Positions 30,661-62,248 of a DNA stretch of 64,000 nt are shown here, piece by piece. Positions within the stretch are counted from its first letter, which is position 1. Every line of letters starts with the position of its first letter. The translations under genes were made by a program, and so were the position numbers. Below the pieces are notes generated by a model. That model was not told the origin of the DNA. It did not search any database and saw only the letters and a program-made list of their open reading frames with translations. This stretch comes from Obrimoposthia wandeli (taxonomy: Eukaryota). The stretch covers positions 3,658,001 to 3,722,000 of the forward strand of contig CDROCS010000506.1 of the NCBI GenBank assembly GCA_977020255.1. Direction: 5' to 3'.

Positions 30661-30698
30661 GGAAGTTACATCTGGTTATACCGGGTGTAGCTCCTTTT
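30661..30698 (+). terminator. Intrinsic terminator after sulfatase 1
   Basis: GGAAGTTACATCTGG-ttata-CCGGGTGTAGCTCC-TTTT. Confidence 0.7.
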
Positions 30699-30764
30699 GG
30701 TTTTTAAAACCATCAATATTAATAGTCTAAATACTGTTTTTTTACAGTTCAGGTAGTGAGTGAT

Positions 30765-32057: not shown

Positions 32058-32064
32058 TAAGGTA

Positions 32065-32649
32065 ATGATGATGAAATATATCAAAGGTCAATTTTTTACG
32101 GTATTGCAGAGAGCATTGTTAAGCGCGGTGCTTAGTGTTATCAGTTTTCAGGCGATGGCGGTTGAATCGAAGATAGCAACCGTGTTCCCGGATGAACAAG
32201 TACAACCCATGGTTAAAAATGCTTATGCGGAAATGAGCCGTCGCTACACGTTATTTGCAGAGTTATTCAATCTTTGCCAACAGAAACCCAATGCAGAGGA
32301 TTGCCAAAAACCTTATGAGCAAGCGAAGCAAAACTACACGGTGGCGTCCTCTATTTACAACTCCATTGAAATGACATTGGTGCCTGCATTCATTGAACTT
32401 GAAACGCCATTAATGAGTTTGGTTGAGTTAAATAAAGCGTTAACCGAACTTGGCTATATGGATACAGAATTGGCTGATGATCAGATTTCGAGCGTGGCAT
32501 TAATACCTTATATTAATCAGTGGCAGGTAAAAAATAATCTACCGGTCACGGATAAAATTTATTTATTACACACTTATCTTATCAGTGCCAATGCCATGCA
32601 AGCTACGCCAGATCTACAGCACAAATTACCACGTAAGCAGCAAAGTTAG
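32065..32649 (+). CDS. Exported hypothetical protein with a degenerate peptidoglycan-binding-like C-terminus
   Basis: Signal peptide ending AMA; LTELGY...INQWQVKNNLPVT. Confidence 0.55.
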   Translation: MMMKYIKGQFFTVLQRALLSAVLSVISFQAMAVESKIATVFPDEQVQPMVKNAYAEMSRRYTLFAELFNLCQQKPNAEDCQKPYEQAKQNYTVASSIYNSIEMTLVPAFIELETPLMSLVELNKALTELGYMDTELADDQISSVALIPYINQWQVKNNLPVTDKIYLLHTYLISANAMQATPDLQHKLPRKQQS

Positions 32650-32657
32650 GGTAAGTT

Positions 32658-33650
32658 ATGACATTATTTCGATTTATTGTATTTGTCTTTATTGCCAGCG
32701 TGTTCACCTTACAAAGTGTACAAGCTGAATCAACAACATTGGAAACGCGTCTAAGTGATGAGAAATACATCGCTGAGATGTCGCAAAATTTAGAACTGCA
32801 GCTTGCTGTTCGTGTTCAAGCCGTGATTGAACTTGGGCAGTTCAGTGGTGCGAATGCTTTAATTGCCATTGCGAGAGCAAGCCGAGCAGATCAATATGAA
32901 CTTAGATTAGCGGCGATTGAGGCGGTTCGATTTTGGAGTGTGAAAGCGCGATGGGATGTTGTTTCCCCTTTAGTTATGGATGAAGACACAAGTGTTCAAG
33001 CGGCTGCAGGTAATGTACTTGTTTCTTTGTGGGGGGAGTTAAATACAGATCAGCAAGCTTATTTACAACCTGCGATAGACCAGTATATAGCAGCGCTTAA
33101 GCAAATGCCGATGAGGTTTGAGATCGCGCTTGAATTAGCGAATGTTTACCGTTACCAGCAACAATTTATAGCGGCGGAACAAGCTTACAAAGTACTGATT
33201 AAGCAATACCCAAAACAAGCGCAAGGGTACCTACAACTCAGTGAGCTCTATCGTCAAAATAACACTGAAGGCTTAGCGAATGAGACGCTAATTCAAGGTA
33301 TTGCAGCAAACCCACAATCGGCTGCGCTTTATTATGCCCAAGGCCTTAGCTATTATCGACAAGGTGATCTGCAACAAGCTGAAATTGAATTACGCCGTGC
33401 AATAGATAATGAACCAAATAATGGTCGTTATGCGTATACGTTAGCAGTCATGATTAACACTGCGCAACCAACTAAAGCCCTAACGCTCTATCAGCAAGCG
33501 TATGACAATACAGGATCTCCGCAGTATTTGTATGCGCTGTGCGAAAACTACATTGGACAAGGACATAATGTACAAGCGAGTCAATGTATCGGAAAATTAA
33601 AGCAAGTAGCCCCTGAAAATATTGTTAAGCAATTGACGGATAAGCTATAA
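32658..33650 (+). CDS. Exported HEAT-repeat + TPR protein
   Basis: Signal peptide; VRVQAVIELG and LRLAAIEA HEAT-like repeats; multiple TPRs (ALYYAQGLSYYRQG...EPNNGRY). Confidence 0.75.
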   Translation: MTLFRFIVFVFIASVFTLQSVQAESTTLETRLSDEKYIAEMSQNLELQLAVRVQAVIELGQFSGANALIAIARASRADQYELRLAAIEAVRFWSVKARWDVVSPLVMDEDTSVQAAAGNVLVSLWGELNTDQQAYLQPAIDQYIAALKQMPMRFEIALELANVYRYQQQFIAAEQAYKVLIKQYPKQAQGYLQLSELYRQNNTEGLANETLIQGIAANPQSAALYYAQGLSYYRQGDLQQAEIELRRAIDNEPNNGRYAYTLAVMINTAQPTKALTLYQQAYDNTGSPQYLYALCENYIGQGHNVQASQCIGKLKQVAPENIVKQLTDKL

Positions 33651-40723: not shown

Positions 40724-41998
40724 CTACCGTTTATTATTTACATCATATGGCTTATTAACCCATTGATCTCGACCTAACGATTTTGCTTCATAGAGGGCGT
40801 CATCAGCTGTCTTAACTATGTTCTTAATCGTCGGTTCATTAAGCGCTGTCGAGAGTGTCGCGCCTATACTGCAGGTTATCTTGATATCAGGTTGTTTTGG
40901 TATGTTAACGTGTCTGACACTATCTAGTACGCGCTGTACTGTTTTTTCTAATTCATCGTTTGATACATTTTTTAAAATAATTGCAAACTCTTCCCCACCA
41001 ATGCGCGCATGAAAATCGTTACCTTCCGGTAGTATTGCTGAAACTGCATTTACCACAGCAACTAAACATTCATCGCCCACATCATGGCCGTATTGATCAT
41101 TAATTTGTTTAAAGTGGTCTAAATCATAAATGATGATTGCGAGTGGCAGGCTATTAGCACATTTTTGATTGATGATATTATCACTGAATTCTTCATATGA
41201 ACGACGGTTGGCAATTAATGTCAGCGAATCTGTATACGCCATTTCATTTAATATAGTTGTACGTATTTTTACTTTTCGGTCTAATTCTTGAGATTGACGG
41301 TGAGTTCGTTTGAGGGTGATAAACATACCCAATAAACTGATAACCGAAAATGCCATGAAGATAATATAAGAATAGCGAACGAGAGTAGCTAGCCCATCAT
41401 TACCGCCCTCTAGAGGCACTGTCACATCAATTGCACCACGCATATCACCTACTTGCCAATCTTTTTTAGGGCTATTGGGGTGATAGTTATGACAATTCAC
41501 ACAGCTTGTTTCCATGTAGATAGCTTCTGCATGGCGTAATACTGGGGTTCCGCCGAGTTCTTCTATACGCTCAAACACAGGTGTTGAAGTACTTAACACT
41601 GCGAGTGCATCACGTTGAAATTTATCTTGAGGGCCGCCTGTTAGTGCTCTGCTTTTAAATGGGTATTTACTGTAGGTGTGAATAATAATACCGGCTTCAC
41701 GGTTTGATACCTTTTCACCAAGCTCAATGGCAAATGTTGCGGGGTTTGGTATTGATAGTGGTTTACCATGATATAACGTTTCAACGGTAATATCTGGATG
41801 TAAGCTTATTTGTGCTATGTCTGCGCTATATGATACTCGAGCTTGGTTAACGGTTGTTGCGATGACCTCAGCCGTGCGGCTTGCTAGTAGTGTCGTGGTC
41901 GAATTTTGAAATTTTTGAACGGCAAATAATGAAATACTAGCCATAAGCATAAAGATAACACTGAAAAAAGCGATAGCGTGAGTTTGAGTTATCTTCAT
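40724..41998 (-). CDS. Diguanylate cyclase with a periplasmic DUF3365 heme-c sensor
   Basis: CVNCH in ..DWQVGDMRGAIDV context; DLDHFKQINDQYGH; GGEEF. Confidence 0.9.
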   Translation of the reverse strand: MKITQTHAIAFFSVIFMLMASISLFAVQKFQNSTTTLLASRTAEVIATTVNQARVSYSADIAQISLHPDITVETLYHGKPLSIPNPATFAIELGEKVSNREAGIIIHTYSKYPFKSRALTGGPQDKFQRDALAVLSTSTPVFERIEELGGTPVLRHAEAIYMETSCVNCHNYHPNSPKKDWQVGDMRGAIDVTVPLEGGNDGLATLVRYSYIIFMAFSVISLLGMFITLKRTHRQSQELDRKVKIRTTILNEMAYTDSLTLIANRRSYEEFSDNIINQKCANSLPLAIIIYDLDHFKQINDQYGHDVGDECLVAVVNAVSAILPEGNDFHARIGGEEFAIILKNVSNDELEKTVQRVLDSVRHVNIPKQPDIKITCSIGATLSTALNEPTIKNIVKTADDALYEAKSLGRDQWVNKPYDVNNKR

Positions 41999-42744: not shown

Positions 42745-43983
42745 TTAAGCCGTGCGCAGTGCAAGGCATTTAAACGCTTCACTGTCTTGATCTGCTTTAA
42801 CACAGACACTCAGTAAATCATCAATAAAGTGCAGGAATGCACGATACTCAATTTGCTTCACTTGTGCTTGTTGTGTCTCAGTGAGCATATGGTACATAGT
42901 CGCAGCACCAAAATCGCCAAAGATGATATTCGCATCGACATCAAACAAGGTGTTGTGGGCGTATAAATCACCATGGCACACTTGATTGTCGTGTAAATGG
43001 GTAAACACTTCATCCATCTGTGAAACCATCTTGTCTATTTGCGTAATAGACAACGTAAAGTCAGTAGGGAAGGTATCACGCGTACAGCTATTAAAGCACG
43101 GTGGTAGTCCTAGGTTTGCATAGTGAGCGGGGATCAAGTTCATGATCAGCGCTAAGTAACCGTCTTCTTTTACTTGTGCTAATGATTGCACTAAGCTCGG
43201 GTGGTTACCGACTTTCAAACAAGCTTGTAACTCATCTTCAGGATAACCATCACTGGTTACTTCGCCTTTAAATACTTTTACTGCTATCTCGTCTGGGAAC
43301 TCAGTTTGTTGTTCATTCCAAACAGCTTTTGAGATCACGCCTGATGCGCCTTGGCCAAGTACGTTTTGTAATGTATAGCTTGATGAGGCTAACTGCGGCA
43401 CGCTATCAATCGATACATTAGTTTGGCTAAATGGATTACCGGAAAATGCAAACCAAGCCAGTTTAGGTAAATCCAACAGCTGCTCAGGGCATTCAGTTAG
43501 GCGGTTCGCTGAAATACGTACTAGCTCTAGGTTATGACATTGAGACATGGTCTGTGGTAACTCAGTCAAACAGTTACCTGCGAGCGCTAGTTTTTGTAAA
43601 CGCGGGCGCTCACCTAATGAGTCTGGTAATACTTCAAGGCGGTTATCCGTTAAGATCAACCAGCGTAATTTCAATGGTAATGAAGTTTCCGGTACTTGGT
43701 TAATTTGGTTTGATTTAAAGCCAACCATTTCTAGATTTGGGCATTGGCCAAGTACTTCAGGTAATGTGACAAATTGATTGTTTGAGGCAAACAAGATCTT
43801 TAACTTTGTTAACTGGATTATCTCTTCTGGCAGCGTTGTTAACTGGTTATTTGATAAATCGAGGATCTCTAAGCTGTCAGCCAATGACAAGATTTCGAGT
43901 GGAAAGGTTGTTAGGTTTTCAGATAAAGTTAAGCGCTTAATACCTGTTAATTCACCCGATTTTAGCTGAGATAGAGTCTGCAA
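42745..43983 (-). CDS. Leucine-rich-repeat + protein-kinase-like fusion
   Basis: LxxLxLxxNxL repeats; LGQGASG, AVKVFK, HGDLYAHN, DFG. Confidence 0.85.
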   Translation of the reverse strand: MQTLSQLKSGELTGIKRLTLSENLTTFPLEILSLADSLEILDLSNNQLTTLPEEIIQLTKLKILFASNNQFVTLPEVLGQCPNLEMVGFKSNQINQVPETSLPLKLRWLILTDNRLEVLPDSLGERPRLQKLALAGNCLTELPQTMSQCHNLELVRISANRLTECPEQLLDLPKLAWFAFSGNPFSQTNVSIDSVPQLASSSYTLQNVLGQGASGVISKAVWNEQQTEFPDEIAVKVFKGEVTSDGYPEDELQACLKVGNHPSLVQSLAQVKEDGYLALIMNLIPAHYANLGLPPCFNSCTRDTFPTDFTLSITQIDKMVSQMDEVFTHLHDNQVCHGDLYAHNTLFDVDANIIFGDFGAATMYHMLTETQQAQVKQIEYRAFLHFIDDLLSVCVKADQDSEAFKCLALRTA

Positions 43984-49308: not shown

Positions 49309-49674
49309 TTATTTCTGCACTAACCAGTTGATGCCTGAAATATGTTTAGGGCCTTCTAAATCAACTAAAATCTCGGTCGGATCGTCGGGATTAATTTTGA
49401 TTGGAAATGCGTTTTTTGGTGCAAGTCTTGGCTCTAGTCCTGCACTCGGGTAAATATCGTCTTGATCTAGAGTGCCATTGTAAAGTTTATGATCATATGA
49501 ATAAGCAATATCAATGAGCACATCATTGTAATCATCATATTCTTGGCTGATCACAATGGCATTTGATGGTGTCCAATCATCTGCGCCACTAAAAACAAAA
49601 AAATACACCGCTGCCATCATTACAATAAAAGAGATTAATGCGGGTTTATTCTGTATTTCAATTCTTTCCGACAT
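49309..49674 (-). CDS. Membrane-anchored hypothetical protein (DUF3592-like)
   Basis: One N-terminal TM; YSYD..LYNG and IKINPDDP motifs. Confidence 0.5.
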   Translation of the reverse strand: MSERIEIQNKPALISFIVMMAAVYFFVFSGADDWTPSNAIVISQEYDDYNDVLIDIAYSYDHKLYNGTLDQDDIYPSAGLEPRLAPKNAFPIKINPDDPTEILVDLEGPKHISGINWLVQK

Positions 49675-49911
49675 ACTGTTACAACTTCCTACTGTTTATT
49701 GACCATATAAAATATAGCGGGATAATATATGGAAACAGCTCCTAACACTATTGAATTATAACTTCTTTTTTTCTGCTGAATTTATAATTAAAATGCTGAT
49801 TCGTAACAACTGTACTACATTAGTTAACATTGATTGATCATATTATTCAATAACAAAAGCCAAAATGACATTCAATATTTAATTGTGTTTATAACATGGA
49901 GTACAGATAAC

Positions 49912-51456
49912 ATGGTTACTACAATGCAGAAAAGGTTAAGGCTGCTTTCATTTGCAGCCTTGGGGTTGGCGTCGCTTAATCTAAGTGCAGCTGAAAAACC
50001 GAATATTCTGGTTATTTGGGGGGATGATATTGGCCAGTCAAATGTCAGTGCTTATACCTTTGGTTTAATGGGCTATAAAACACCGAGTATTGATAGTATT
50101 GCGAAAGAAGGCATGATGTTTACCGATTACTATGCTGAGCAATCTTGTACCGCGGGTCGTTCAACGTTTATTACTGGCCAAAGTGTATTGCGTACAGGCT
50201 TAAGTAAAGTTGGTTTACCTGGTGCTGACGTTGGTTTGCAAGCATCGGACGCCACGATTGCTGAAATCCTTAAACCTATGGGTTATGCAACAGGTCAATT
50301 TGGTAAAAATCACCTTGGTGATCAAGATAAATTCTTGCCAACTGCACACGGTTTTGATGAGTTCTTTGGTAATTTATATCACTTAAATGCTGAAGAAGAA
50401 CCTGAGAATATTGATTATCCGAAAGATCCTGAATTCCGTAAAAAATTCGGCCCTCGTGGTGTTATTCATTCTTATGCAGATGGAAAAATTGAAGATACAG
50501 GTCCATTAACTAAAAAACGCATGGAAACAATTGATGATGAAAGCATCGTTGCAGCCATGAAGTTTATGGATAAATCAGTAAAAGCCAAAAAACCATTCTT
50601 TGTTTGGTGGAATGCAACACGTATGCATTTCCGTACTCATATCCAACCTTCACAGCAAGGTCAATCTAACTTAAGTAATTATGCTGATGGTATGATTGAA
50701 CATGATAAACATGTTGGTACATTATTGAAGAAAGTCGATGATCTAGGTATTAAAGATAATACGATCGTGTTCTATTCTACAGATAACGGCCCACACATGA
50801 ACAGCTGGCCTGATGCCGGTGCAACGCCTTTCCGTGGCGAGAAAAATACTAACTGGGAAGGTGCTTATCGTGTTCCCGCTATGGTTCGCTGGCCGGGCAA
50901 AATTAAAGCTGGTGAAGTGTCTAACGAGATCATGCATCACATGGACTGGTTACCAACGTTTGCAGCAGCCGCTGGTGATTCAGATGTGAAAGCGAAACTA
51001 TTGAAAGGTCATAAAGCTGGCCCTAAGAAGTTTAAAAATCATTTAGACGGTTACAACTTCTTACCTTACCTAACGGGTAAATCAGAAACTGCACCACGTA
51101 AAGAAATCTTTTACTTCACTGATGATGGTGATTTAGCTGCATTACGTTATAACAACTGGAAAGCGGTGTTCATGGAGCAGCGTGTTCAAGGTACGATGCA
51201 AATCTGGTCTGAACCGTTTGTGACATTACGTTTACCTAAATTGTTTAACTTACGTATGGACCCATACGAAACTGCAGATATTACGTCTAATACATACTAC
51301 GACTGGTTATTAGACCATGCGTACATGTTTGTGCCTGCACAAGCGTATGTTGGTGATTTCTTAAAAACATTCCAAGAGTTCCCTCCTAGTCAAAAAGCGG
51401 CAAGTTTCAGCTTAGATCAGGTAATGGAAAAACTACAAGAAAGTCACAATAAATAA
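49912..51456 (+). CDS. Secreted formylglycine-dependent arylsulfatase (paralog 2)
   Basis: GGAG SD before ATG 49912; signal peptide; WGDDIG; SCTAGR; long stretches identical to paralog 1 (HGFDEFFGNLYHLNAEEEPEN, FGPRGVIHSYADG). Confidence 0.92.
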   Translation: MVTTMQKRLRLLSFAALGLASLNLSAAEKPNILVIWGDDIGQSNVSAYTFGLMGYKTPSIDSIAKEGMMFTDYYAEQSCTAGRSTFITGQSVLRTGLSKVGLPGADVGLQASDATIAEILKPMGYATGQFGKNHLGDQDKFLPTAHGFDEFFGNLYHLNAEEEPENIDYPKDPEFRKKFGPRGVIHSYADGKIEDTGPLTKKRMETIDDESIVAAMKFMDKSVKAKKPFFVWWNATRMHFRTHIQPSQQGQSNLSNYADGMIEHDKHVGTLLKKVDDLGIKDNTIVFYSTDNGPHMNSWPDAGATPFRGEKNTNWEGAYRVPAMVRWPGKIKAGEVSNEIMHHMDWLPTFAAAAGDSDVKAKLLKGHKAGPKKFKNHLDGYNFLPYLTGKSETAPRKEIFYFTDDGDLAALRYNNWKAVFMEQRVQGTMQIWSEPFVTLRLPKLFNLRMDPYETADITSNTYYDWLLDHAYMFVPAQAYVGDFLKTFQEFPPSQKAASFSLDQVMEKLQESHNK

Positions 51457-51469
51457 GTAATATCATGTT

Positions 51470-51498
51470 AAAGGGCGCATTGGCGCCCTTTATTTTTT
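51470..51498 (+). terminator. Intrinsic terminator/attenuating hairpin between the sulfatase and moxR
   Basis: AAAGGGCGC-attg-GCGCCCTTT-ATTTTTT. Confidence 0.7.
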
Positions 51499-51573
51499 AT
51501 GCTTATTTATATTAGTGAGCGATAAAAAATAACACATACTCAATCCAATCTCAGTCATATCAGTGGTGTCATT

Positions 51574-52551
51574 ATGGATAAACAAGCAGTCTATACGCAG
51601 CTTGAGCTACTTAAAAATGGATTACAATCGCAGGTATTAGGGCAAGCAGATATAGTCAAAGGTTTGTTAGTTGCCTTACTTGCCGATGGTCATGTGCTGC
51701 TGGAAGGTTTACCTGGTACGGCGAAAACTCGTAGTGTTAAAGCGTTATCTGAATTGTTAGGGCTAAGCCAAGGACGAGTGCAATTTACCCCGGACTTATT
51801 GCCTTCTGATGTGATTGGGTATGAGTCCCTATCTGTGAACAATGGTCAGCAAATTGATTTTAACCCGGGACCTGTATTTAACAGTGTGTTGTTGGCGGAT
51901 GAGATCAATCGTGCGCCGCCTAAAGTACAGTCAGCACTGTTAGAGGCGATGGAAGAACGACAAGTGACCGTCGGCAATACCAGCCATAAGATGCAGCCTG
52001 TATTTATGGTCATGGCAACGCAAAACCCCATAGAACAAGAAGGTACTTATCCATTACCTGAAGCGCAAATGGACCGTTTTCTGTTTAAGCTTATCTTAGA
52101 CTATCCCGACCATGACACTGAACTGGCTATCATTCGTTTAGTGCGAGGACAAAACAAACAAAAAAGTATGCAATTAACGCCATTAGATAACGCTGAGGCA
52201 TTCATTTTAACAGCGCGTGATTTAGTGGATGAAGTATATATTTCTGAAAATATTGAGCAGTATATTGTTTCGCTGGTGATGGCAACACGTGATCCAACTA
52301 TCACAAATAATGAACAGCTAGCCGAACTTATTCGTGTTGGTGCGAGCCCTAGAGCAAGTATTGCGTTGGATAAAGCGGCTCGTGCCCACGCATTATTGTC
52401 AGGCCGTGATTTTGTTGACCCAGATGATGTAAGAGCTGTGGCTGTACCAGTATTGAATCATCGGATCACGCTCAGTTATAACGCGGTAGCCTTGGGTAAA
52501 TCAGCATCGCAAGTCGTGATTGATTTGATTAAAGCGACGCCGGTGCTTTAG
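51574..52551 (+). CDS. moxR: MoxR-family AAA+ ATPase
   Basis: GLPGTAKT, QFTPDLLPSD, DEINRA, ATQNPIEQEGTYPLPEAQMDRF, GASPRA. Confidence 0.95.
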   Translation: MDKQAVYTQLELLKNGLQSQVLGQADIVKGLLVALLADGHVLLEGLPGTAKTRSVKALSELLGLSQGRVQFTPDLLPSDVIGYESLSVNNGQQIDFNPGPVFNSVLLADEINRAPPKVQSALLEAMEERQVTVGNTSHKMQPVFMVMATQNPIEQEGTYPLPEAQMDRFLFKLILDYPDHDTELAIIRLVRGQNKQKSMQLTPLDNAEAFILTARDLVDEVYISENIEQYIVSLVMATRDPTITNNEQLAELIRVGASPRASIALDKAARAHALLSGRDFVDPDDVRAVAVPVLNHRITLSYNAVALGKSASQVVIDLIKATPVL

Positions 52552-52564
52552 GAGGCGCATAGCA

Positions 52565-53485
52565 ATGGATGATGCGCGGATTTACACTAATCTAGCCAGG
52601 TTAATCGCATTAAAGCAATATGCGGTGAAAATACGCTTGAGTGCCAGTTATCGGCCTGCAGGCATGCTATCTGGACAGCATGCCTCACGCCTGCGTGGTA
52701 GTGGTTTAAATTTTGAAGAATTAAGACAATATCAAGATGGGGATAATATTCGCCAAATTGATTCACGTACCAGTGCTCGTCTAGGTAAACCTTATGTGCG
52801 TATTTATTCTGAAGAAACAGACCGTCCCGTATCGATAGTAGTTGATCAGCGCCTGTCTATGTTTTTTGGTAGTGTCGATAAAACGAAATCAGTGGTTGCT
52901 GCAGAGGTGGCGGCTTTATTTGCATGGATGGCACATTCAGCAGGCGACAGAGTGGGTGGTTTGGTGATCGCAGATAAAATTCACCAAATCAGCACTAAGC
53001 GTACCAGCCGAGGTGTACTGCAATTGTTAGAAACGATAGTGACAGCAAATAATCAATTGTCACTTGATCCGGTAAAAGCATCAAACAACCCCCAATCGTC
53101 TATTTTCAGTCAACTCAAGCCTTGGCTATCAAGCTTAAATAATCAAAGTGTCGTGATTCTAATTACTGATATTGAAGGTCTTGCAGAAGATGATATTAAT
53201 GAATTAGAGGTGATACATCACAAGGCTAATGTTCTGTTATTTATCGTACAAGATCCGTTGGAAGTCGATATTAGTCGGGCTCATGGCCTGAGCGTTTCAC
53301 AAGGACAACAGCAGATAAATATTCAAGCAAATAGTGACAGTCAGAATAAGTTTGACCAGTTATATCAAGCTAAGTTACAGCGATTAGAAAAAGCATTGGT
53401 GGCGAGCACTTTACCGATTGGATTAGTTAATACGACTGACCCGGTTGATTTGCAAATAGCGACATTATTACAGGGACATAAATAA
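52565..53485 (+). CDS. DUF58 protein (degenerate VWA)
   Basis: GLNFEELRQYQDGDNIRQID, VDQRLSMFFGS, GDRVG. Confidence 0.9.
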   Translation: MDDARIYTNLARLIALKQYAVKIRLSASYRPAGMLSGQHASRLRGSGLNFEELRQYQDGDNIRQIDSRTSARLGKPYVRIYSEETDRPVSIVVDQRLSMFFGSVDKTKSVVAAEVAALFAWMAHSAGDRVGGLVIADKIHQISTKRTSRGVLQLLETIVTANNQLSLDPVKASNNPQSSIFSQLKPWLSSLNNQSVVILITDIEGLAEDDINELEVIHHKANVLLFIVQDPLEVDISRAHGLSVSQGQQQINIQANSDSQNKFDQLYQAKLQRLEKALVASTLPIGLVNTTDPVDLQIATLLQGHK

Positions 53486-53994
53486 TGAATTCGTTGCAGC
53501 AACTGGTAGGACTGATATTACCCCAGCATGTGAGCTGGTGGCCATTAGCGCCTGGTTGGTACGTATTGATGATGTTGGTTGTACTTGTGTTAGGTATCTT
53601 TATTTACCATAAGCGTAAGCATTATATTAACAATGCCTATCGACGTAATGCATTATCACAGCTGCAGTTGTTATCAATGCAGGATGCGACGCAGATGTTA
53701 GGTATCTTACAGCATGCACTTAGCCATGCACTTAACTATACACTTAACCATGCTCTTAATGATGCGCTTAGTCATACTACTGCACAGCAGGTTGAATTAC
53801 AGGAGGAGACATTTCTAGTAAGTCTAAACAAAGGCACCGATAGTGTGTCTTTTACTCATGTTGATTGGCAGTTATTAAACCAATTGGCTTTTCAGCAGGC
53901 AGATAAAATTAACTGTAATGATGATGAATTCGCTACCTTGAAAACGAAGTGCCAGCAATGGCTACAGGGGCATCATTATGAACATCACACTTGA
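53485..53994 (+). CDS. DUF4381 membrane protein
   Basis: LP..VSWWPLAPGW, one TM, YRR.AL; carries an internal 12-nt tandem repeat. Confidence 0.85.
   Translation: MNSLQQLVGLILPQHVSWWPLAPGWYVLMMLVVLVLGIFIYHKRKHYINNAYRRNALSQLQLLSMQDATQMLGILQHALSHALNYTLNHALNDALSHTTAQQVELQEETFLVSLNKGTDSVSFTHVDWQLLNQLAFQQADKINCNDDEFATLKTKCQQWLQGHHYEHHT
53713..53772 (+). repeat. Imperfect 12-nt tandem repeat x5 (HALS/HALN/YTLN/HALN/DALS)
   Basis: catgcacttagc catgcacttaac tatacacttaac catgctcttaat gatgcgcttagt. Confidence 0.8.
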
Positions 53995-54988
53995 GTACCC
54001 TTGGTTACTATTGCTATTAGTATTACCTTATTTTATTCATCGTTTTTTACCTGCATATATGCAGCCGAGTGTGTCGATTTATATCCCATTCTTTCAGCGT
54101 GTCGTCGCTGCCACAGGTCAAACTCCTAACGCTGGGGCTGTTGCACATCAACGTCAGCTTATTCAGTCTATTGCGTTGATTTTATTTTGGGTTGGATTGA
54201 TATTCAGCTTAGCTCGGCCGGTCTTATTAGGTGAAGTCCAGATCACGGAGAAAACGGGTCGTGACTTGATGATCGCAGTCGATTTATCGCAATCGATGGA
54301 ACAAAAAGATTACTTTATGGCGGGTGATGACCAGCAGGCTATTTCAAGAATTGATGCGCTTAAAGCAGTACTAAGTGCATTTTCAAAGGAAAGAGCTGGC
54401 GATCGTCTGGGATTGATTGTGTTTGGATCTGGTGCGTATTTACAAGTCCCTTTCACTGACGATCTACAATTATGGTTAAATTTACTCAATGACATGGATA
54501 CTCAGATGGCAGGGCCTGCCACCGCGATTGGTGATGCTATTGGCTTATCTATTCGTGCATTTGAGCAATCTAATTCGACCCAACGTTTGTTACTGCTGGT
54601 GACTGATGGTAGTGATACCAACTCACGGCTTGATGCTGTTGATGCAGCTCGTGTCGCGGCAACCGATGGTATAAAAATTTATACCTTAGGGTTGGGCGAT
54701 CCTGAAACAGAAGGTGATGATAAAGTCGATTTTACCAGCCTTGAGAAGATCGCGAGTGTCAGTAATGGGGCGAGTTATGTCGCTGCAGATAGTGATAGTT
54801 TACAAAAGGTGTTAGCTGATATTAATAATATCGCGCCTGCTAATTATGAACAGCAGCACTTTCAGCCTAAAACCGATCTATACCCTTGGTTGATGGGGCC
54901 ATTGTTAATTTTTTATGTGCTTGTTTGGGGCTTTCTAACGATACAGACTTATTGGAAAAATAGCAGAAGAGGCAAATATGTTGAGTGA
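53978..54988 (+). CDS. BatA-like membrane VWA protein
   Basis: MIDAS DLSQS, GDRLGLIVFG, TAIGDAIG, LVTDG. Confidence 0.88.
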   Translation: MNITLEYPWLLLLLVLPYFIHRFLPAYMQPSVSIYIPFFQRVVAATGQTPNAGAVAHQRQLIQSIALILFWVGLIFSLARPVLLGEVQITEKTGRDLMIAVDLSQSMEQKDYFMAGDDQQAISRIDALKAVLSAFSKERAGDRLGLIVFGSGAYLQVPFTDDLQLWLNLLNDMDTQMAGPATAIGDAIGLSIRAFEQSNSTQRLLLLVTDGSDTNSRLDAVDAARVAATDGIKIYTLGLGDPETEGDDKVDFTSLEKIASVSNGASYVAADSDSLQKVLADINNIAPANYEQQHFQPKTDLYPWLMGPLLIFYVLVWGFLTIQTYWKNSRRGKYVE

Positions 54989-56540
54989 TCTCCAGTTTGT
55001 TCAACCGTTATGGTTGCTGTTATTTTTACCCATTTCACTCTTGTTATTTTTGTTGTGGCGTAGCCGTATTCAGGCCGTCGCGTTGGCTGGACAAGGTATT
55101 GTGGCTAGCCATCTGGCGCGTGTATTTTCATTACAGGGTAATAAAAAAGCCAGTTTAAAACCTATTCTGCTCGCTCTCATTGGCACGAGTTTTGTTATTA
55201 TTGCCATCGCAGGGCCGCAAATACAGTTGGCTGGCGATGAGAAAATAAATGCGCCGCTTATTATTGCATTAGACCTGTCCATATCGATGGAAAATGAAAA
55301 TCAGTCTGGTGTTTCTAATTTACAGCGGGGTAAATTAATTACCGATCAACTATTGCAGCAAGGATTCAATCGTCCCGTGTCATTACTTGCGTTTGCGGGT
55401 AGTAGCCATCAAGTTTTACCTGTTTCAGAACAGTTAAAATTATTGCGTTTGTACCTAGGTTATTTAGCGCCCTCGGTCATGCCTGAAGAAGGGGATGATC
55501 TTAATCAGTTATTACTGGAAGTTAATCGGATTAAAGACGGACAGCAATTTGGTTATGACTTATTAATTATCAGTGATGGTTTTAGTGTCAACGTGGCTGA
55601 TTTTAACCAGGCTAAAAAAGCCAATAATGTGTTACTTGTTGCCTTAACGGACACTGCCGTGCAGCAAGCTAAATCACTAGATATAGCCGTATTAACGGGT
55701 AAATACTTAGACAGTGCAGACAGTAGTCTTTACTTGCGATTAACCGATCTTGCAGAGAACCATCGTGCTGGAGATCAAGTACTGACCAGTATAGGTTACT
55801 GGTTATTGTATCCCGTGTTATTGATGGCGTTGTATTTCTTCCGACGTGGTTTTAACTTGCACTGGGCTGCGGTAATCGTACTCGTTGTGAACTTGAGCCC
55901 AAATACTGCAGAGGCTGCTTTTATTGATTGGTGGATGACGGCCGATCAACAAGGGGCTTATTATTTTAATCAACAAGACTACAAAGAAGCTGCGATACGT
56001 TTTCAAGATCCGAGTTGGCAAGCTGCGGCTTATGTCTATGCGAAGGATTATCGTAAAGCGGCGGCTATTTATGAACAGCAAGATGATTTGACAGGGTTAT
56101 TTAATTTAGCTGTGACCAACAGCGAAGGGCGTAATTATCATCGGTCGCAAAAGTTGTATCAATTATTATTAGAAATTGAACCTGATAACGCTGATGCATT
56201 AAATAACCTACGTATTATTACCGCGTTGATCGAAGAGATTAAGCTCACAGCTGAAAACCAACAAGAAGAAAAACCGCCCAGTGAGAATGCTGATTCAGAG
56301 GATATGGTCGATGAGCAATTGGCTGCAGAACGTGAACAAATAGGCAAGGTAACGCTTGAATTAGAAACGCTTTCGCTAGATGAACTACTGGGTAGTGAAC
56401 AGAAAAAGCAGCAATGGTTACGTGATATAAGTCGTGATCCTAAGTTATTTTTAGGGGCGAAGTTTCAAGCACAATATAATAAAAAGTTTAATAAAAAGCA
56501 TAATAAACAATTAGACACTACAGGTGGTGTGAATGAATAG
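54978..56540 (+). CDS. BatB/BatC-like VWA + TPR membrane protein
   Basis: MIDAS DLSIS, LLAFAGS, LIISDG; C-terminal TPRs (WQAAAYVYAKDY..AA). Confidence 0.82.
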   Translation: MLSDLQFVQPLWLLLFLPISLLLFLLWRSRIQAVALAGQGIVASHLARVFSLQGNKKASLKPILLALIGTSFVIIAIAGPQIQLAGDEKINAPLIIALDLSISMENENQSGVSNLQRGKLITDQLLQQGFNRPVSLLAFAGSSHQVLPVSEQLKLLRLYLGYLAPSVMPEEGDDLNQLLLEVNRIKDGQQFGYDLLIISDGFSVNVADFNQAKKANNVLLVALTDTAVQQAKSLDIAVLTGKYLDSADSSLYLRLTDLAENHRAGDQVLTSIGYWLLYPVLLMALYFFRRGFNLHWAAVIVLVVNLSPNTAEAAFIDWWMTADQQGAYYFNQQDYKEAAIRFQDPSWQAAAYVYAKDYRKAAAIYEQQDDLTGLFNLAVTNSEGRNYHRSQKLYQLLLEIEPDNADALNNLRIITALIEEIKLTAENQQEEKPPSENADSEDMVDEQLAAEREQIGKVTLELETLSLDELLGSEQKKQQWLRDISRDPKLFLGAKFQAQYNKKFNKKHNKQLDTTGGVNE

Positions 56541-57666
56541 ATTCATCATCCTTCTTTGCATTGTACCGCATCTGCTATGGGCGAAAAGTATACCTGCTGA
56601 AAAGCAATCTCAAGCAGCAGTGATCACGTCAACGATTAATGAATATCATCCAGTGGTTGGGCAAAAGGTAACGATAAACTATTTGCTTGCGGTGAAAGGG
56701 TATTTTAATGGCGCAACACGATTTCAATTACCTTCTTTATCCAAAGCACGTTTGGCACAAACATCCCAATTTGCCATTAATGGTAGCACTGTCATGGACG
56801 GTGACAAATATGCGACTCAGCTTTGGCAAATAGACGTATACCCAGAGCATAGCGGTTTACTCGAATTACCGGCTTTGAGTTTCAATGTTAAATATAATGG
56901 CGCTGAAGGTGATAATCATGTGGCTCAATTGCGCAGTGAAAACTTAGCCGTATTTGCTTATGTGCCTGAACCTTTAAAACAAATTAAAAAATATATCGTG
57001 TCTAGCGATGTGCAGCTTACTCAACGTTGGTCTGAACCGCAGACGAGTTATCAAGTAGGGGATATCATTCAGCGAGAGATCACGATTAAAGCCGCTGATA
57101 TAAAGAGTATCCAAATACCGGCAATCAAGTTTCCTATTGTTGATGGTATACAAATCAATGCCCAAGAGCCAAAGCTTGATGATCAAAGTAATCGTGGAGA
57201 GCAAACCGGATCAATAAAGCAAACGATCACTTATGTCATCAAACAGGCTGGTGATTATCAGCTTGGCGGTGAACCGTTAAATTGGTGGCATCTCGAAAAA
57301 GGTTTACAGCAAAGTTACTTTGAAGAAAATACTATCAAGGTATCTGGTTTTAGCCCTCTGCAAAAAAAACGCTTAATTATCATCAGCACCGTTATTCTAT
57401 TATTGTTATTTAGCTATTTAAAATATCGAAAAATGCCACCCAGTCTTAATTCCCAGCTTAAAAAATCGTTAAAAAACAAACAGTGGCCACGGTTTATCGC
57501 TTTGCTTTACCAAAAAGCAGATCTACATGCTAATTTGGGGTTATTGAAAGAAAATCAAAATAGTGAAACCGTCGCGCAGTTATTTGAAACGTCTTATCAA
57601 GCACCGGCCAAAACAGCTGGAAAAGATAAGTTCAGCGCCTGCAAATTAAAAGAATTAATCAAATGA
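56533..57666 (+). CDS. BatD-like protein
   Basis: Signal peptide, Ig-like repeats, VGD.IQR.ITI, WW, C-terminal TM; standard position in the Bat gene order. Confidence 0.78.
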   Translation: MNRFIILLCIVPHLLWAKSIPAEKQSQAAVITSTINEYHPVVGQKVTINYLLAVKGYFNGATRFQLPSLSKARLAQTSQFAINGSTVMDGDKYATQLWQIDVYPEHSGLLELPALSFNVKYNGAEGDNHVAQLRSENLAVFAYVPEPLKQIKKYIVSSDVQLTQRWSEPQTSYQVGDIIQREITIKAADIKSIQIPAIKFPIVDGIQINAQEPKLDDQSNRGEQTGSIKQTITYVIKQAGDYQLGGEPLNWWHLEKGLQQSYFEENTIKVSGFSPLQKKRLIIISTVILLLLFSYLKYRKMPPSLNSQLKKSLKNKQWPRFIALLYQKADLHANLGLLKENQNSETVAQLFETSYQAPAKTAGKDKFSACKLKELIK

Positions 57667-59846
57667 GTTATTTAATGCCTTTAATCATGTTGTTGTTCAA
57701 CTTAATTTTATTCTCGTTAAGCCCTGTTGTGCTTGCCCAGCCCAGTTATATGGTTAATGAAAACTATGTGGGTAACGATACTTGTATTGATTGCCATCAA
57801 AGTGAAGTGGCAAGTTGGAAGCCGTCTCATCACGCCAACTCTATGCAGCCAGCTAGCGACAAAAGTGTACTTGGGAATTTTAATAACATTCGCTTTGAGT
57901 CTAAAGACGGCTGGACTATTTTCAATCAAGACCAAGCGGGTTATTACATTGAAACTGGGCAGACAGGTCAAAAAGGCCGGCGCTATGAAGTGCCTTACGT
58001 ATTTGCTTATACACCTTTACAGCAAATATTGGTTGATATTGGTAAGGGGCGCTTACAAGCATACCCTGTGGCTTGGGATTCTCGAGATAAAGAAGAAGGA
58101 GGCCAACGTTGGTACAGCCTTTATGAAGACACGCATACACCAGGTACTCCTTTTAATTGGCAGGGGCAGTTTAACAATTGGAACGCCCGTTGCGCTGAGT
58201 GTCACTCCACGGATCTAAAGCGTGGCTATGATGTCGAAAAAGACAGTTACAACACGACATTTAGTGAAGTAAATGTCAGTTGTGAAGCTTGCCACGGACC
58301 AGCTGAAAAACATATCAACTTAACCAAAGCGCAGCAAGGCTCAGTTGCCAATTCAGGCTTTAAAAACAAGCAGTATAAAAAGTTGGATTGGATATTCCAA
58401 GATGGGAAGAATACTGCCGAGGTACTTCAAGGCAAACCCGTTTCTATTGACCATGGCCAACCAGACCAATGCGCAGCATGCCATAGTCGACGTGCATCAT
58501 TAACTGATGGCAATGATCCAAGTGAGTTTACTCAGCACTATATTCCGCGTTTGGCACTACCTGAGCTATATTACAGTGATGGACAAATTCAGGATGAAGT
58601 ATACGTTTATGGTTCATTCAGTCAAAGCAAGATGGCGGCTGCTGGTGTGACTTGCAGTAATTGCCACGATCCCCATTCTGGTAAGGTGCTAACACTAGAT
58701 AATAACCTGTGTGCGCAGTGTCATGTGCCAAGCAAGTTTGATACACCTGAGCATACACTGCATGATTCAGGATCACCCGGTGGCCAATGTATTGACTGCC
58801 ACATGCCTGAAAAACGTTACATGGGCGTCGATGATCGTCGTGATCATGCTTTCCGTATTCCGAATCCTTGGGTGAGCGAAAAACTAGGCACACCGGATGT
58901 ATGTTTAGACTGCCACCAAGATAAGAATAGCCAATGGTCACAAGGCCAGTTAAAGAGTAGAAAAGCTGACGTATTTGGTCAATACGACGATATCGGTAGC
59001 GCGTTAGTCCTAAATGCAGAAAATCCGCCACAAGGGCAAGCTAATATCGCGAAACTGGTGGTTGATGAAAGCCAACCTGCAATGCGCCGTGCTGTATTAC
59101 TTGGTCATCTTGATATGACTAAAATGGAAAATATGCAGATCTTGAATGAGGCGGCTAACTCTTCTGAAAGTTTAGTTAAGTTAGGTGTTATTGCTGTTTT
59201 AGAGCGATCTTCACAACAGTTACAATTGCAAGTTGGCTTTGGTCTATTGTATGACGAACATAAAAATGTACGTCTGCAAGCGATTAAATTGCTGGCCCCT
59301 GCATTTCGCCGAGAGCTACCTGAAAAAGCGCAAAAACCAATGCAAGATGCTTTGATGGAAGCGGTCACGACTTATCAAAAGCAACAGGATTTATTATCAG
59401 CACAAATTGCGCTGGCAGACCTCGCTTATAAAGTAGGGGATCTTGAACAAGCGCAGGTGCAGTATTTAAATGCAGTAAGGATCCAGCCCAGCTTTTTACC
59501 AAGTAAGCTTAACCTCGCGAGTGTCTATCGTGAAACCAGCCAGTTAGATAAAGCCCGTGTGTTACTCGAAGAGATATTAGTGGTTGAGCCAAAGCACGCG
59601 ATGGCCTTACATAACTTAGGGTTGATATATGTCGTTAAACGAAACTGGCCTCAAGCCTTGGATGCGCTGATTAAAGCCAAGCAGATTGAACCTGATAATG
59701 CGCGTTTCTCTTTTGTCTATGTATTAGCTTTGGAAGCGAGTGGGAATTATAAGGAAGCGTTACTTCAGGTCGATATGCTGGAACAACGCACACCAGGTGA
59801 TCCCGCGTTAAAACAATTACGAGAGCGGTTACAAAGCCTGCTATAA
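57663..59846 (+). CDS. Octaheme c-type cytochrome fused to HEAT and TPR repeats
   Basis: Eight CxxCH motifs (CIDCH, CAECH, CEACH, CAACH, CSNCH, CAQCH, CIDCH, CLDCH) followed by HEAT-like and TPR repeats. Confidence 0.88.
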   Translation: MSYLMPLIMLLFNLILFSLSPVVLAQPSYMVNENYVGNDTCIDCHQSEVASWKPSHHANSMQPASDKSVLGNFNNIRFESKDGWTIFNQDQAGYYIETGQTGQKGRRYEVPYVFAYTPLQQILVDIGKGRLQAYPVAWDSRDKEEGGQRWYSLYEDTHTPGTPFNWQGQFNNWNARCAECHSTDLKRGYDVEKDSYNTTFSEVNVSCEACHGPAEKHINLTKAQQGSVANSGFKNKQYKKLDWIFQDGKNTAEVLQGKPVSIDHGQPDQCAACHSRRASLTDGNDPSEFTQHYIPRLALPELYYSDGQIQDEVYVYGSFSQSKMAAAGVTCSNCHDPHSGKVLTLDNNLCAQCHVPSKFDTPEHTLHDSGSPGGQCIDCHMPEKRYMGVDDRRDHAFRIPNPWVSEKLGTPDVCLDCHQDKNSQWSQGQLKSRKADVFGQYDDIGSALVLNAENPPQGQANIAKLVVDESQPAMRRAVLLGHLDMTKMENMQILNEAANSSESLVKLGVIAVLERSSQQLQLQVGFGLLYDEHKNVRLQAIKLLAPAFRRELPEKAQKPMQDALMEAVTTYQKQQDLLSAQIALADLAYKVGDLEQAQVQYLNAVRIQPSFLPSKLNLASVYRETSQLDKARVLLEEILVVEPKHAMALHNLGLIYVVKRNWPQALDALIKAKQIEPDNARFSFVYVLALEASGNYKEALLQVDMLEQRTPGDPALKQLRERLQSLL

Positions 59847-59895
59847 AAAAACTATAAAGCCAACTATAAAACCAAGTGAAATAAATGGAGTTGAT

Positions 59896-61608
59896 ATGGT
59901 TTCTAAAAAGATGCAAAAAACAATAACTACGATTGCTTGTCTGCTCGTTACGACAGCGTCGGGAAGTGTACTTGCCAAACCGCAAGGACAACCTAAGTTA
60001 GTACTGCAAATAACGGTAGATGCGTTGCGTGGTGATTTACCAACGCGGTTTTTAGGAAAAATGGAGAAGGGTGGTTTTCGCTATCTACTAGAAGAAGGCG
60101 TTGTATACAACAATGCCCATTATCAGCATGCTAATACTGAAACCATTGTCGGTCATAGCTCTCTAGCGACTGGCGCGCCACCCTCTGTGCACGGTATGGT
60201 CGGTAATGTGTGGTTTGATCGTAAGCTTGATCGCGTCGTTTATAATATTGAAGATGAGGATTACCATCTATTAGGCAGCGGTGGCGTAGATAAAAATACC
60301 GAAATAGACTCAACGCAAAAAGCAGCAAAGGGGGATGGGCGCTCACCATTACCGCTATTATCAAGTACGTTAAGTGATGAGATATATACCGCTTTTAATG
60401 GTAAGTCGAAAGTCTTTGGGGTCTCAGTTAAAGACCGTGCGGCGGTTTCTCTGGCTGGTCAATACGGTAAGGCTCTGTGGTTTTCTAAGTCCACTAAGCA
60501 GTTTGTAAGCAGTGACTACTATTATAAAAATTATCCTGAATGGGTCAATAACTGGAATCAACTTAACAAAGCGGATCAATTCGATCAGCAAAGTTGGTCG
60601 CTTATGTTTGAAGAGCAGGACTACTTATTTTCAAATGAAAAACAGGTTAACTACAAAACTGATTTAGCAGGTTTTGGTCAACGTTTTCCACACCCTTACG
60701 GTAAAGCATCGGGTAAATATTTTGGTACGCTGTTAACGCTTAGTCCTGCAGGTGATGAACTGACGTTAGACTTTGCTAAAACATTAATCGAACAAGAAAA
60801 AATTGGTCAGAATACGGTACCGGATTATCTATCTGTCAGTTTCTCTTCTACAGATTATGTCATTCATATGTTTGGTCCATCGAGTTTAGAGGCTGAGGAT
60901 AATATATTACGTCTAGACCGCACGTTGGCGGAGTTATTCCGTTATGTTGATGCTACGGTAGGGCTAGATAATACTTTGATTGTATTGTCGGCGGATCACG
61001 GCGCGGCTGATGCCCCTGGTTATTTGAATGAATTGGGTGCGAAAAAACCAAAATACTTCGATGAAAAGTTAATGGCGGATGCGGGCATTTATAAAGTATT
61101 AGAACAAAAGTTTGGCGTAGGTAAAGCACTCGTAAAACTTTACTCTAAACCTTATATTTACCTTGATCATAAAGTCATCAAAAGTAATAAACTTAAGCTT
61201 GAGGATGTGCAAGCAGTGCTCGCTAAGGAAATTGAAAAAATTAGTGGCGTTGAATATGCAGTGACAACAGAAGACATTAAGCATGGTCGTTTAGATGATC
61301 AACGTGTCTTACGTTTGGTCGCGAATAACTTTAACAAACAGCGCTCTGGTGATATCCATATTGTGTTTTCTCCGAATACCTTTATTAATGATTTTGATGG
61401 TTTAAAAGTCGCGTCGACTCATGGTTCGCCGTGGTCATATGATACGCATGTACCGATAATATTTGCTGGTATGGATATCGATGATAAGCAGGTAAGTCGC
61501 GCTGTCACGCCTTATGATATTGCGCCAACGATTGCTAACTATCTAGGGATCACTCAGCCAACAGGCACGACAGGTGAAGTATTAAAAGAAGTCGTTACCG
61601 ATGATTAG
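59896..61608 (+). CDS. PafA-type alkaline phosphatase superfamily protein
   Basis: ITVDALR, Thr nucleophile TETIVGH, SVKDR (Lys/Arg pair of PafA), DYVIH, SADHG, THGS; signal peptide. Confidence 0.85.
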   Translation: MVSKKMQKTITTIACLLVTTASGSVLAKPQGQPKLVLQITVDALRGDLPTRFLGKMEKGGFRYLLEEGVVYNNAHYQHANTETIVGHSSLATGAPPSVHGMVGNVWFDRKLDRVVYNIEDEDYHLLGSGGVDKNTEIDSTQKAAKGDGRSPLPLLSSTLSDEIYTAFNGKSKVFGVSVKDRAAVSLAGQYGKALWFSKSTKQFVSSDYYYKNYPEWVNNWNQLNKADQFDQQSWSLMFEEQDYLFSNEKQVNYKTDLAGFGQRFPHPYGKASGKYFGTLLTLSPAGDELTLDFAKTLIEQEKIGQNTVPDYLSVSFSSTDYVIHMFGPSSLEAEDNILRLDRTLAELFRYVDATVGLDNTLIVLSADHGAADAPGYLNELGAKKPKYFDEKLMADAGIYKVLEQKFGVGKALVKLYSKPYIYLDHKVIKSNKLKLEDVQAVLAKEIEKISGVEYAVTTEDIKHGRLDDQRVLRLVANNFNKQRSGDIHIVFSPNTFINDFDGLKVASTHGSPWSYDTHVPIIFAGMDIDDKQVSRAVTPYDIAPTIANYLGITQPTGTTGEVLKEVVTDD

Positions 61609-61624
61609 TATGGTCGATGCCGTG

Positions 61625-61655
61625 AATAATGAGCCTGCATATAGGCTCATTATTT
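61625..61655 (+). terminator. Terminator closing the Bat/cytochrome/phosphatase operon
   Basis: AATAATGAGCCT-gcatat-AGGCTCATTATT. Confidence 0.7.
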
Positions 61656-61766: not shown

Positions 61767-61973
61767 ATGCACAATGATGACCTTAAAGCGCTGTTAAACA
61801 ACATCCAATCTGCAGTAAATACTGATGCTGCCTCTGGTAGTAATGTAACAACTTACACATTATCAGATGAAGCGCTTACTGAAAAAGGACTTGATGCACT
61901 TGCTGAAAATTTAAAGGGCTACAAAGACGTTAGAATTGACGGTAGCAATTTAGTGCTGACTCACGCTGAATAA
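61767..61973 (+). CDS. Small acidic hypothetical protein (68 aa)
   Basis: AG-rich SD; followed by its own terminator (ACAGAGGCT/AGCCTCTGT, 61992-62016). Confidence 0.6.
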   Translation: MHNDDLKALLNNIQSAVNTDAASGSNVTTYTLSDEALTEKGLDALAENLKGYKDVRIDGSNLVLTHAE

Positions 61974-62248
61974 TAATATTATTTATCGTAAACAGAGGCT
62001 TGTTAACAGCCTCTGTATTTTCTTGTAAATTAGAACGACTTTTCTACTTCTGCATTAAATCTTAAAGTTAATACCCATCTCATACTATCCCCTTATTGCT
62101 TGGCCTACTTACAATTCGATACACTGCTGCCCATTAACAACATGTAAGACATTGACCTTGTTTGCGAGTGTTATTCTACTTTCTATCATGGTTAAAGTCG
62201 CAAGCATGGATCATGGCTACTAATGTAAAATAGAAAGGATTTAGGGAT

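Follow-up and report, generated by a model that had tools for sequence, protein, structure and literature searches.

A sulfatase-linked MoxR-Bat module and octaheme cytochrome in a Moritella-like bacterium: a candidate client for Bat operons

Described in 1999, Bat operons are found across many phyla, pathogens among them; to our knowledge, neither a client nor a mechanism is known for them. S1 sulfatases contain an active-site divalent metal, usually Ca2+. Here we analyze a stretch of DNA in which genes of both kinds stand side by side, namely a 64-kb window (64,000 nucleotides, positions 3,658,001 to 3,722,000 of contig CDROCS010000506.1, deposited under Obrimoposthia wandeli). The region studied, positions 49912-61608 of its plus strand, holds a Bat-type MoxR module between an exported S1 sulfatase and an octaheme c-type cytochrome.

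A precedent for such a module comes from methanol dehydrogenase (MDH). MxaR (MoxR), MxaS (DUF58-type), MxaC/MxaL (VWA), MxaA and MxaK are each needed for the incorporation of Ca2+ into this periplasmic enzyme, and deletion of mxaR, S, A, C, K or L yields a Ca2+-poor, inactive MDH that is rescued in vitro by Ca2+ (PMC12276312). By analogy, the Bat genes described here may form a sulfatase-dedicated MoxR/VWA maturation module, most likely for Ca2+ or metal loading, a reading whose chances we judge to be about even. The sulfatase would then be the first concrete candidate client for Bat operons. MoxR/VWA maturation modules as such are already known, while the sulfatase client, the octaheme partner and the linkage appear to be new. 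Our literature searches, which did not extend to subscription papers, found no description of an association of MoxR with a sulfatase or of a multiheme protein and TPR with a sulfatase, in keeping with an initial annotation of the window that knew of no functional account of this combination. A Tenderiales preprint mentions in passing batABD beside a multiheme cluster (10.1101/2022.05.06.490989).

A Bat-type module beside an exported sulfatase

Window proteins are 95-98% identical to those of Moritella dasanensis, and the host of this DNA is a Moritella-like marine bacterium; the window sequence contains no N. The region encodes, in order, a CTAGR sulfatase, a hairpin, MoxR, DUF58, DUF4381, a BatA-like VWA protein, a BatB-like VWA+TPR protein, a probable BatD, the octaheme protein and a PafA-like phosphatase (Table 1). 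Open reading frame (ORF) coordinates place start/stop overlaps of 1, 17, 11, 8 and 4 nt from DUF58 through to the cytochrome, and the same pattern appears in independent gene calls of three orthologous loci (L084, L165 and L168; collected loci are given as L numbers). A gap of 117 nt, containing the hairpin, separates the sulfatase from moxR, and 49 nt lie between the cytochrome and the PafA-like gene.

The first gene product, sulfatase-1, has the fold (PF00884), the (C/S)-x-(P/A)-x-R motif and the metal and catalytic residues of an S1 formylglycine-dependent sulfatase, and its best solved relative is the arylsulfatase 7AJ0 (2.4e-56). Orthologues are 57-84% identical and share invariant residues C79, R83, D38, D39, D291, N292, K132, H134 and K311, a set that includes all four metal ligands (D38, D39, D291 and N292). 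CTAGR is likewise invariant in the 23 high-scoring orthologues aligned with the window's sulfatase. The protein bears a Sec-type signal peptide and therefore crosses the membrane in an unfolded state. This mode of export, the invariant metal ligands and the Mxa precedent are the reasons for which we read the adjoining Bat genes as a probable metal-loading module.

Within the module, a MoxR of the AAA_3 type comes first and DUF58 second, followed by BatA- and BatB-like membrane VWA proteins with DxSxS motifs, the latter with a TPR region, as is typical of Bat-type operons. The BatA model matches the BatA-like protein at 1e-42, under its Leptospira-specific cut-off, and the Pfam VWA_2 and TPR matches of the BatB-like protein are weak. 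A protein 95% identical to the window's BatD carries the NCBI name 'BatD family'. Genes for BatC (TPR) and BatE (TPR/SH3), as in B. fragilis, are absent among the ORFs of 51574-59846, an absence shared with other proteobacterial loci.

The hairpin behind the sulfatase comprises 10 bp, six of them G-C, followed by a U-run, with a folding energy of -17.1 kcal/mol (z = -3.2). This hairpin also lies behind the sulfatase stop codon in L081, L082, L084, L165, L167 and L168; stated as the pattern GGGCGC-N3-4-GCGCCC plus U-run, it lies 3' of the sulfatase in the window, Motilimonas, Agarivorans, three Shewanella-type loci and L165. It is kept whether the next gene is moxR or the cytochrome. A scan of 51493-51573, between hairpin and moxR, gave no sigma-70-like site, and a separate promoter there was rejected on that result. 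The conserved hairpin and the lack of a promoter in the scan fit lower expression of the helper genes by read-through, though they do not prove it.

These results uphold most of what the initial annotation had described in the region. Its gene content and domain calls were confirmed by ORF listing and domain searches, and the overlapping start and stop codons, the DxSxS MIDAS motifs of both VWA proteins (DLSQS and DLSIS) and the terminator-like hairpin ahead of moxR were all found as stated, the last also by its fold and its conservation in other loci. Its description of the Bat module as complete holds for MoxR, DUF58, DUF4381, BatA, BatB and probably BatD and fails for BatC and BatE. A hairpin does follow the PafA-like gene, where a single closing terminator had been proposed, but a 68-aa ORF and a second terminator (61992-62016) come next.

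Conserved linkage of sulfatase, Bat genes and cytochrome

Conservation was examined from three search anchors, namely the cytochrome, the sulfatase and Bat (BatD/MoxR). Three of three BatD relatives (42, 38 and 28% identity) lie in Bat modules adjoining the orthologous sulfatase, as do four of five MoxR relatives, those of S. piezotolerans WP3, V. inusitatus, Oceanicoccus and V. harveyi (70, 60, 58 and 57% identity); the fifth, from Halioglobus (L172, 59%), has no sulfatase within 10 kb. In all, seven of the eight Bat-anchored look-ups in this clade led to a module next to an orthologous CTAGR sulfatase, with at least five gene orders represented, and the Bat label changes at least 11 times on the sulfatase tree.

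The sulfatase-anchored set consisted of 79 of 80 metagenome loci that were fetched, many of them short, with partners counted within 6 kb. Here the neighbors are a HAD-IB phosphatase (about 20 loci), FGE (17), cytochrome (6), Bat (5), PafA (4) and anaerobic sulfatase-maturing enzyme (anSME; 3), and 37 loci contain none of these. Because Bat is absent from most sulfatase loci, it is accessory to the sulfatase and not obligatory. The commonest neighbor is a secreted HAD-IB-like phosphatase of about 335 aa, seen for example at L084:12227-13240, L082:7018-8013 and L171:16234-17235 and in about 20 metagenome loci.

The cytochrome-anchored set was made up of the best 80 genome loci, from 80 species genomes. 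Clustering of neighbors in these loci places an S1 sulfatase within 8 kb of the cytochrome in 27, directly adjacent in 12, and identifies S1 sulfatase as the sole neighbor family that recurs across phyla. A clear sulfatase-1 orthologue (at least 600 bits, invariant QSCTAGR, signal peptide) lies within 10 kb in 17 of the 80, and these 17 span Gammaproteobacteria, Planctomycetota, Acidobacteriota and Myxococcota. GATase, glyoxalase, RdgC, ParE-like and YceI genes were set aside as partners, their synteny being specific to Halieaceae and not cross-phylum. Bat genes adjoin the cytochrome in 5 of the 80 loci, before or after it and in differing gene orders, and close relatives (Motilimonas, Agarivorans and a Moritella metagenome-assembled genome) have the sulfatase and cytochrome without Bat. 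Because the cytochrome often adjoins a sulfatase where Bat is absent, it is primarily a sulfatase partner and not a Bat subunit.

The PafA-like protein has the NPP fold with a Thr nucleophile and aligns with PafA (5TJ3) over residues 32-567 (3e-94), including that nucleophile. Its score against the PafA equivalog NF042991 (468.5 bits) is under the cut-off of 650, and this is still its best-fitting family. PafA was found in nine loci, mostly without Bat (L001, L005, L088, L089, L102 and L111), and it alternates with the secreted HAD phosphatase; in Shewanella VB17, the HAD phosphatase replaces PafA in a window-like order. A role of PafA as a Bat client is accordingly not supported, since it goes with the sulfatase or the cytochrome, mostly in Bat-less loci, and swaps with the HAD phosphatase. 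It is a co-travelling hydrolase here, as the secreted HAD phosphatase is elsewhere.

The initial annotation had proposed that the clients of the Bat module are the hydrolases encoded beside it, and had made the proposal depend on linkage between the two. Such linkage exists for the sulfatase, which is a plausible client on the seven of eight Bat-anchored look-ups, and nothing marks PafA as one. The same annotation had cast the cytochrome as a redox partner within the Bat machine, a role at odds with its frequent position next to a sulfatase without Bat.

The octaheme-HEAT/TPR cytochrome and sulfatase maturation

The cytochrome is a protein of 727 residues with a signal peptide, exactly eight CXXCH motifs, no CXXCK and 16 Cys. 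Its AlphaFold2 model, built without hemes (pLDDT 87.7, pTM 0.86), comprises a beta-rich and multiheme part followed by an all-helical C-terminal half. OcwA (6I5B) is the sole solved relative of the heme part, and a remote one: it is the best fold match (Foldseek E 1e-8, TM 0.48 on the target), with a best sequence match of 1.2e-11. The family is large: its members occur in at least 597 species genomes, and the homologues scored number more than 6,000. An identity as NrfA, which needs five hemes including CXXCK, was ruled out by the eight CXXCH motifs, the lack of CXXCK and a match to PF02335 that covers profile positions 242-318 of 438 only. Nine homologues (P0004, P0008, P0009, P0011, P0012, P0014, P0018, P0019 and P0052) carry the NCBI label 'ammonia-forming cytochrome c nitrite reductase subunit c552'. 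Because the octaheme family has no CXXCK, this label looks like a propagated misannotation.

A second sulfatase cluster lies 18 kb upstream of the first, at 27957-33650. It encodes a paralogous CTAGR sulfatase, a genuine anSME and a stand-alone periplasmic HEAT/TPR protein, here termed HTPR (Table 1). HTPR aligns end to end with the C-terminal half of the cytochrome (hhalign 99.6%, E 1.3e-23, 284 columns), and a phmmer search with it picks out, in the collected loci, 83 of 92 cytochrome ORFs and none of the other TPR proteins. It is 31% identical to a TPR gene adjoining the anSME in L166, and occurs also in L170 and L171; the anSME-HTPR pair adjoins sulfatase and Bat in V. inusitatus, V. harveyi and L166. 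This homology, and the position of HTPR beside anSME and sulfatase, identify the cytochrome, as judged from its sequence, as a fusion in which an octaheme domain is joined to a periplasmic module associated with sulfatases.

Read together, the observed gene content, export signals, translational coupling, conserved linkage and HTPR homology outline a possible mechanism, each biochemical step of which we infer from synteny and the MxaRSACKL analogy. The neighborhood would be built around the Sec-exported S1 sulfatase with its CTAGR motif and Ca2+ site. From the cytoplasm, MoxR ATPase and DUF58 would power BatD and the VWA/MIDAS proteins of the membrane, and these in turn would act on the newly exported apo-sulfatase; the most likely task is loading of the active-site Ca2+ or completion of folding. 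The octaheme-HEAT/TPR protein would be another and more widely distributed partner of the sulfatase in the periplasm, and would probably dock the enzyme through its HEAT/TPR half. The terminator after the sulfatase gene would keep the enzyme abundant and the helpers scarce.

Several points weigh against this scheme. General stress phenotypes are what has been published for Bat in Bacteroides, Leptospira, Francisella and Riemerella, organisms not known for this sulfatase. The Halioglobus locus is a clade member without a sulfatase within 10 kb, and about 90% of the sampled sulfatase loci, as well as most cytochrome loci, have no Bat genes nearby, unless Bat is encoded elsewhere in those genomes. 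The Mxa analogy is confined to the MoxR/DUF58/VWA core, and the module is known here from its genes. The chance expectation for linkage is a rough estimate and not a computed null; it puts adjacency within 10 kb at about 1% or less for a gene of 1-3 copies in a genome of about 4 Mb. In favor of the scheme, scans anchored on the sulfatase or the cytochrome encounter Bat genes about tenfold more often than the rough chance estimate.

A different role for the cytochrome would make the octaheme domain a periplasmic enzyme that uses heme to make or repair the catalytic formylglycine (FGly) in place of anSME or FGE, with the HEAT/TPR half holding the sulfatase; we consider this unlikely. In its favor, among 108 orthologous sulfatases, a cytochrome lies within 10 kb in 30, FGE or anSME in 23, and both in none (Fisher p = 3.6e-4). 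Yet this exclusivity largely reflects a split of the sulfatase tree into a clade rich in cytochromes and another rich in FGE, and a phylogeny-aware test has 1-3 informative contrasts (p >= 0.25); with the independent-pairs test powerless, exclusivity was rejected as proof of equal function and serves as a lead only. Stand-alone HEAT/TPR proteins adjoin anSME (window 30756-33650, L166, L170 and L171), whereas the octaheme-fused form occurs without a local anSME, and two sister sulfatases, L033_3792 with the cytochrome and L166_2971 with anSME/FGE, have Bat in common. Many invariant polar residues of the heme domain (R276, R277, D306, Q308, E312, R392, R393 and D394) resemble an active site more than a wire. 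A third, unidentified sulfatase-maturation system has moreover been inferred for E. coli (PMC6189696). Set against these points, in 53 of the 80 cytochrome loci no sulfatase at all lies within 8 kb. The genuine anSME 18 kb away excludes the notion of a genome without another maturase, and CxAxR motifs are standard anSME substrates; no FGE (PF03781) was found among the ORFs of the 64-kb window by phmmer with the FGE from L123 as query. We know of no heme enzyme that makes FGly. That the octaheme-HEAT/TPR family acts after export as such a third maker or repairer in place of anSME/FGE and, together with Ca2+ loading by MoxR/Bat, completes an S1 sulfatase assembly line is distinctly unlikely in our estimation.

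The neighborhood might instead be a nutrient-scavenging island, in which the sulfatase and PafA or HAD phosphatase remove sulfate and/or phosphate groups from a substrate that is perhaps hydrophobic, the cytochrome oxidizes or reduces the product, and Bat is an envelope scaffold or stress module. The secreted HAD-IB phosphatase as the commonest sulfatase neighbor, replaced by PafA in some loci, agrees with this picture, as do FadL-like Toluene_X porins beside the sulfatase in L166 and L169 and the nearest solved fold, that of the multifunctional terminal reductase OcwA. We nonetheless hold it to be rather unlikely: sulfate, the sulfatase product, is redox-inert in the periplasm, Bat is linked to the sulfatase itself across many gene orders, and a scavenging island explains neither why the cytochrome carries a domain that elsewhere accompanies a sulfatase maturase nor why FGE or anSME occurs in the equivalent neighborhood. 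It is decidedly improbable, finally, that Bat is a general aerotolerance or envelope-stress system whose adjacency to hydrolases is incidental, or that its client is the multiheme cytochrome and not the sulfatase. The literature phenotypes of Bat are stress-related, Bat lies beside multiheme clusters in Tenderiales and near an MtrC-like cytochrome in Halioglobus (L172), and L035 has Bat and cytochrome without a sulfatase; but seven of eight Bat-anchored look-ups adjoin the sulfatase, L167, L168, L170 and likewise L171 do so without the cytochrome, and the differing arrangements argue for selection on the linkage.

Further features of the window and comparison with described systems

Upstream of sulfatase-1, a sigma-70-like promoter candidate is a consensus match only, such sites being no commoner in the window than in shuffled sequence. 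Positions 49660-49930, read by eye without a scan, showed no convincing Pho box of tandem CTGTCAT repeats at 11-nt spacing. Behind the PafA-like gene, the AT-rich hairpin, not flagged by the terminator consensus scan, is the likely end of the operon; the 68-aa ORF that follows it has no family match, and the second terminator lies 3' of that ORF.

Table 1. Positions of the features analyzed in the window
Feature	Position	Strand	Details
Exported Cys-type S1 sulfatase (sulfatase-1), motif QSCTAGR	49912-51456 (alternative start 49834)	+	PF00884 9e-52
Intrinsic-terminator-like hairpin between sulfatase and moxR	51469-51492	+	GGGCGC/GCGCCC stem and U-run
MoxR AAA+ ATPase, predicted cytoplasmic	51574-52551	+	AAA_3 (PF07726) 2e-59, AAA_lid_2, Walker B VLLADE, no transmembrane (TM) segment
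DUF58 protein, cytoplasmic, VWA-like without DxSxS	52565-53485	+	PF01882 4e-29, no TM segment
DUF4381 single-pass membrane protein	53485-53994	+	PF14316 1.6e-18, one TM-like segment, residues 22-40
BatA-like membrane VWA protein	53978-54988	+	VWA 6e-19, MIDAS DLSQS, three TM-like segments
BatB-like membrane VWA protein, C-terminal TPR	54978-56540	+	MIDAS DLSIS, TM segments, BatA model 9e-11
Probable BatD family protein, signal peptide and C-terminal TM anchor	56533-57666	+	PF13584 23.4 bits, cut-off 24.1
Periplasmic octaheme c-type cytochrome (residues ~35-420) fused to HEAT/TPR solenoid (~423-727)	57663-59846	+	8 CXXCH
PafA-like alkaline phosphatase (NPP family), exported	59896-61608	+	PF01663 2e-45
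Sigma-70-like promoter candidate 5' of sulfatase	49699-49726	+	TTGACC-16-GATAAT, 10/12 consensus matches
AT-rich 14-bp hairpin directly 3' of PafA	61624-61655	+	-24.8 kcal/mol for 62-nt stretch, z = -4.8
68-aa ORF between PafA hairpin and glutaredoxin-like gene	61767-61973		Shine-Dalgarno-like lead, own terminator
Paralogous CTAGR sulfatase (sulfatase-2)	29041-30621	+	56% identical to sulfatase-1
anSME, radical SAM/SPASM	30756-32057	+	TIGR03942 474 bits, cut-off 349; Pfam Radical_SAM and SPASM
Periplasmic HEAT/TPR protein HTPR, 330 residues, signal peptide	32658-33650	+	Stand-alone homologue of cytochrome C-terminal half

Other observations accompany these features. The second sulfatase cluster also includes a LuxR-type regulator on the minus strand and a secreted 194-aa protein without a family match. 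Elsewhere in the window, a minus-strand ORF at 42745-43983 has both leucine-rich repeats and a protein kinase domain of eukaryotic type, an uncommon pairing in a marine gammaproteobacterium, near an HD-GYP/dCache protein (36029-38887) and a GGDEF protein (40724-41998). A 1223-aa ORF at 16653-20324 occupies a stretch of raised G+C (0.44-0.46) with strong AT skew against its surroundings. In the Halioglobus locus, an 868-aa MtrC-like multiheme cytochrome (L172:17683-20289, minus strand) lies 1.6 kb downstream of the Bat module, echoing Tenderiales. FadL-like (Toluene_X) outer-membrane channels stand beside the orthologous sulfatase at two unrelated loci (L166:1636-2739 and L169:18732-19976), which hints at a hydrophobic sulfate-ester substrate.

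Since this clade stands almost always beside one orthologous exported sulfatase, the question of a Bat client becomes a simple assay in culturable bacteria such as Vibrio harveyi, Shewanella piezotolerans WP3, Aliivibrio logei and Moritella. If the proposed role is correct, Ca2+ loading by MoxR/VWA proteins, the MxaRSACKL principle, would hold for another class of enzymes as well, and a far more widespread one. The analysis also defines a large, uncharacterized cytochrome family that is linked to sulfatases and often mislabeled as nitrite reductase, and brings to light a HEAT/TPR protein of the periplasm that occurs with anSME. Obtaining marine and gut sulfatases in active form by expression is often difficult, so knowledge of their helper proteins would be of practical value.

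Compared with described systems, the region resembles MxaRSACKL in that a MoxR AAA+ protein, a protein of the DUF58 type and a pair of membrane VWA proteins are encoded next to a periplasmic Ca2+ enzyme exported by Sec. It differs in its putative client, an S1 sulfatase and not MDH, in having DUF4381 and BatD in place of MxaA and MxaK, and in the extra octaheme-HEAT/TPR partner. With the Bat operons of Bacteroides, Leptospira, Francisella and Riemerella, for which published work gives stress phenotypes only and names no client, the module shares a leading MoxR, DUF58, a small membrane protein, BatA (VWA), BatB (VWA+TPR) and a probable BatD, with translational coupling of the genes; unlike them, it lacks BatC and BatE and is flanked by a conserved sulfatase and cytochrome. 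FGE and anSME (TIGR03942) occupy the same neighborhood of the same sulfatase family, anSME together with the stand-alone HEAT/TPR protein, but the cytochrome shares no domain with either and is periplasmic, whereas anSME is cytoplasmic. The PafA-like protein resembles PafA in NPP fold, aligned Thr nucleophile, approximate length and export, differing in its score under the equivalog cut-off (468 vs 650) and in being encoded after a cytochrome in a sulfatase neighborhood. The cytochrome itself has the multiheme c-type fold of OcwA and the NrfA/octaheme superfamily, from which it is set apart by eight hemes without CXXCK, an identity of 17% and an additional HEAT/TPR solenoid of 300 residues.

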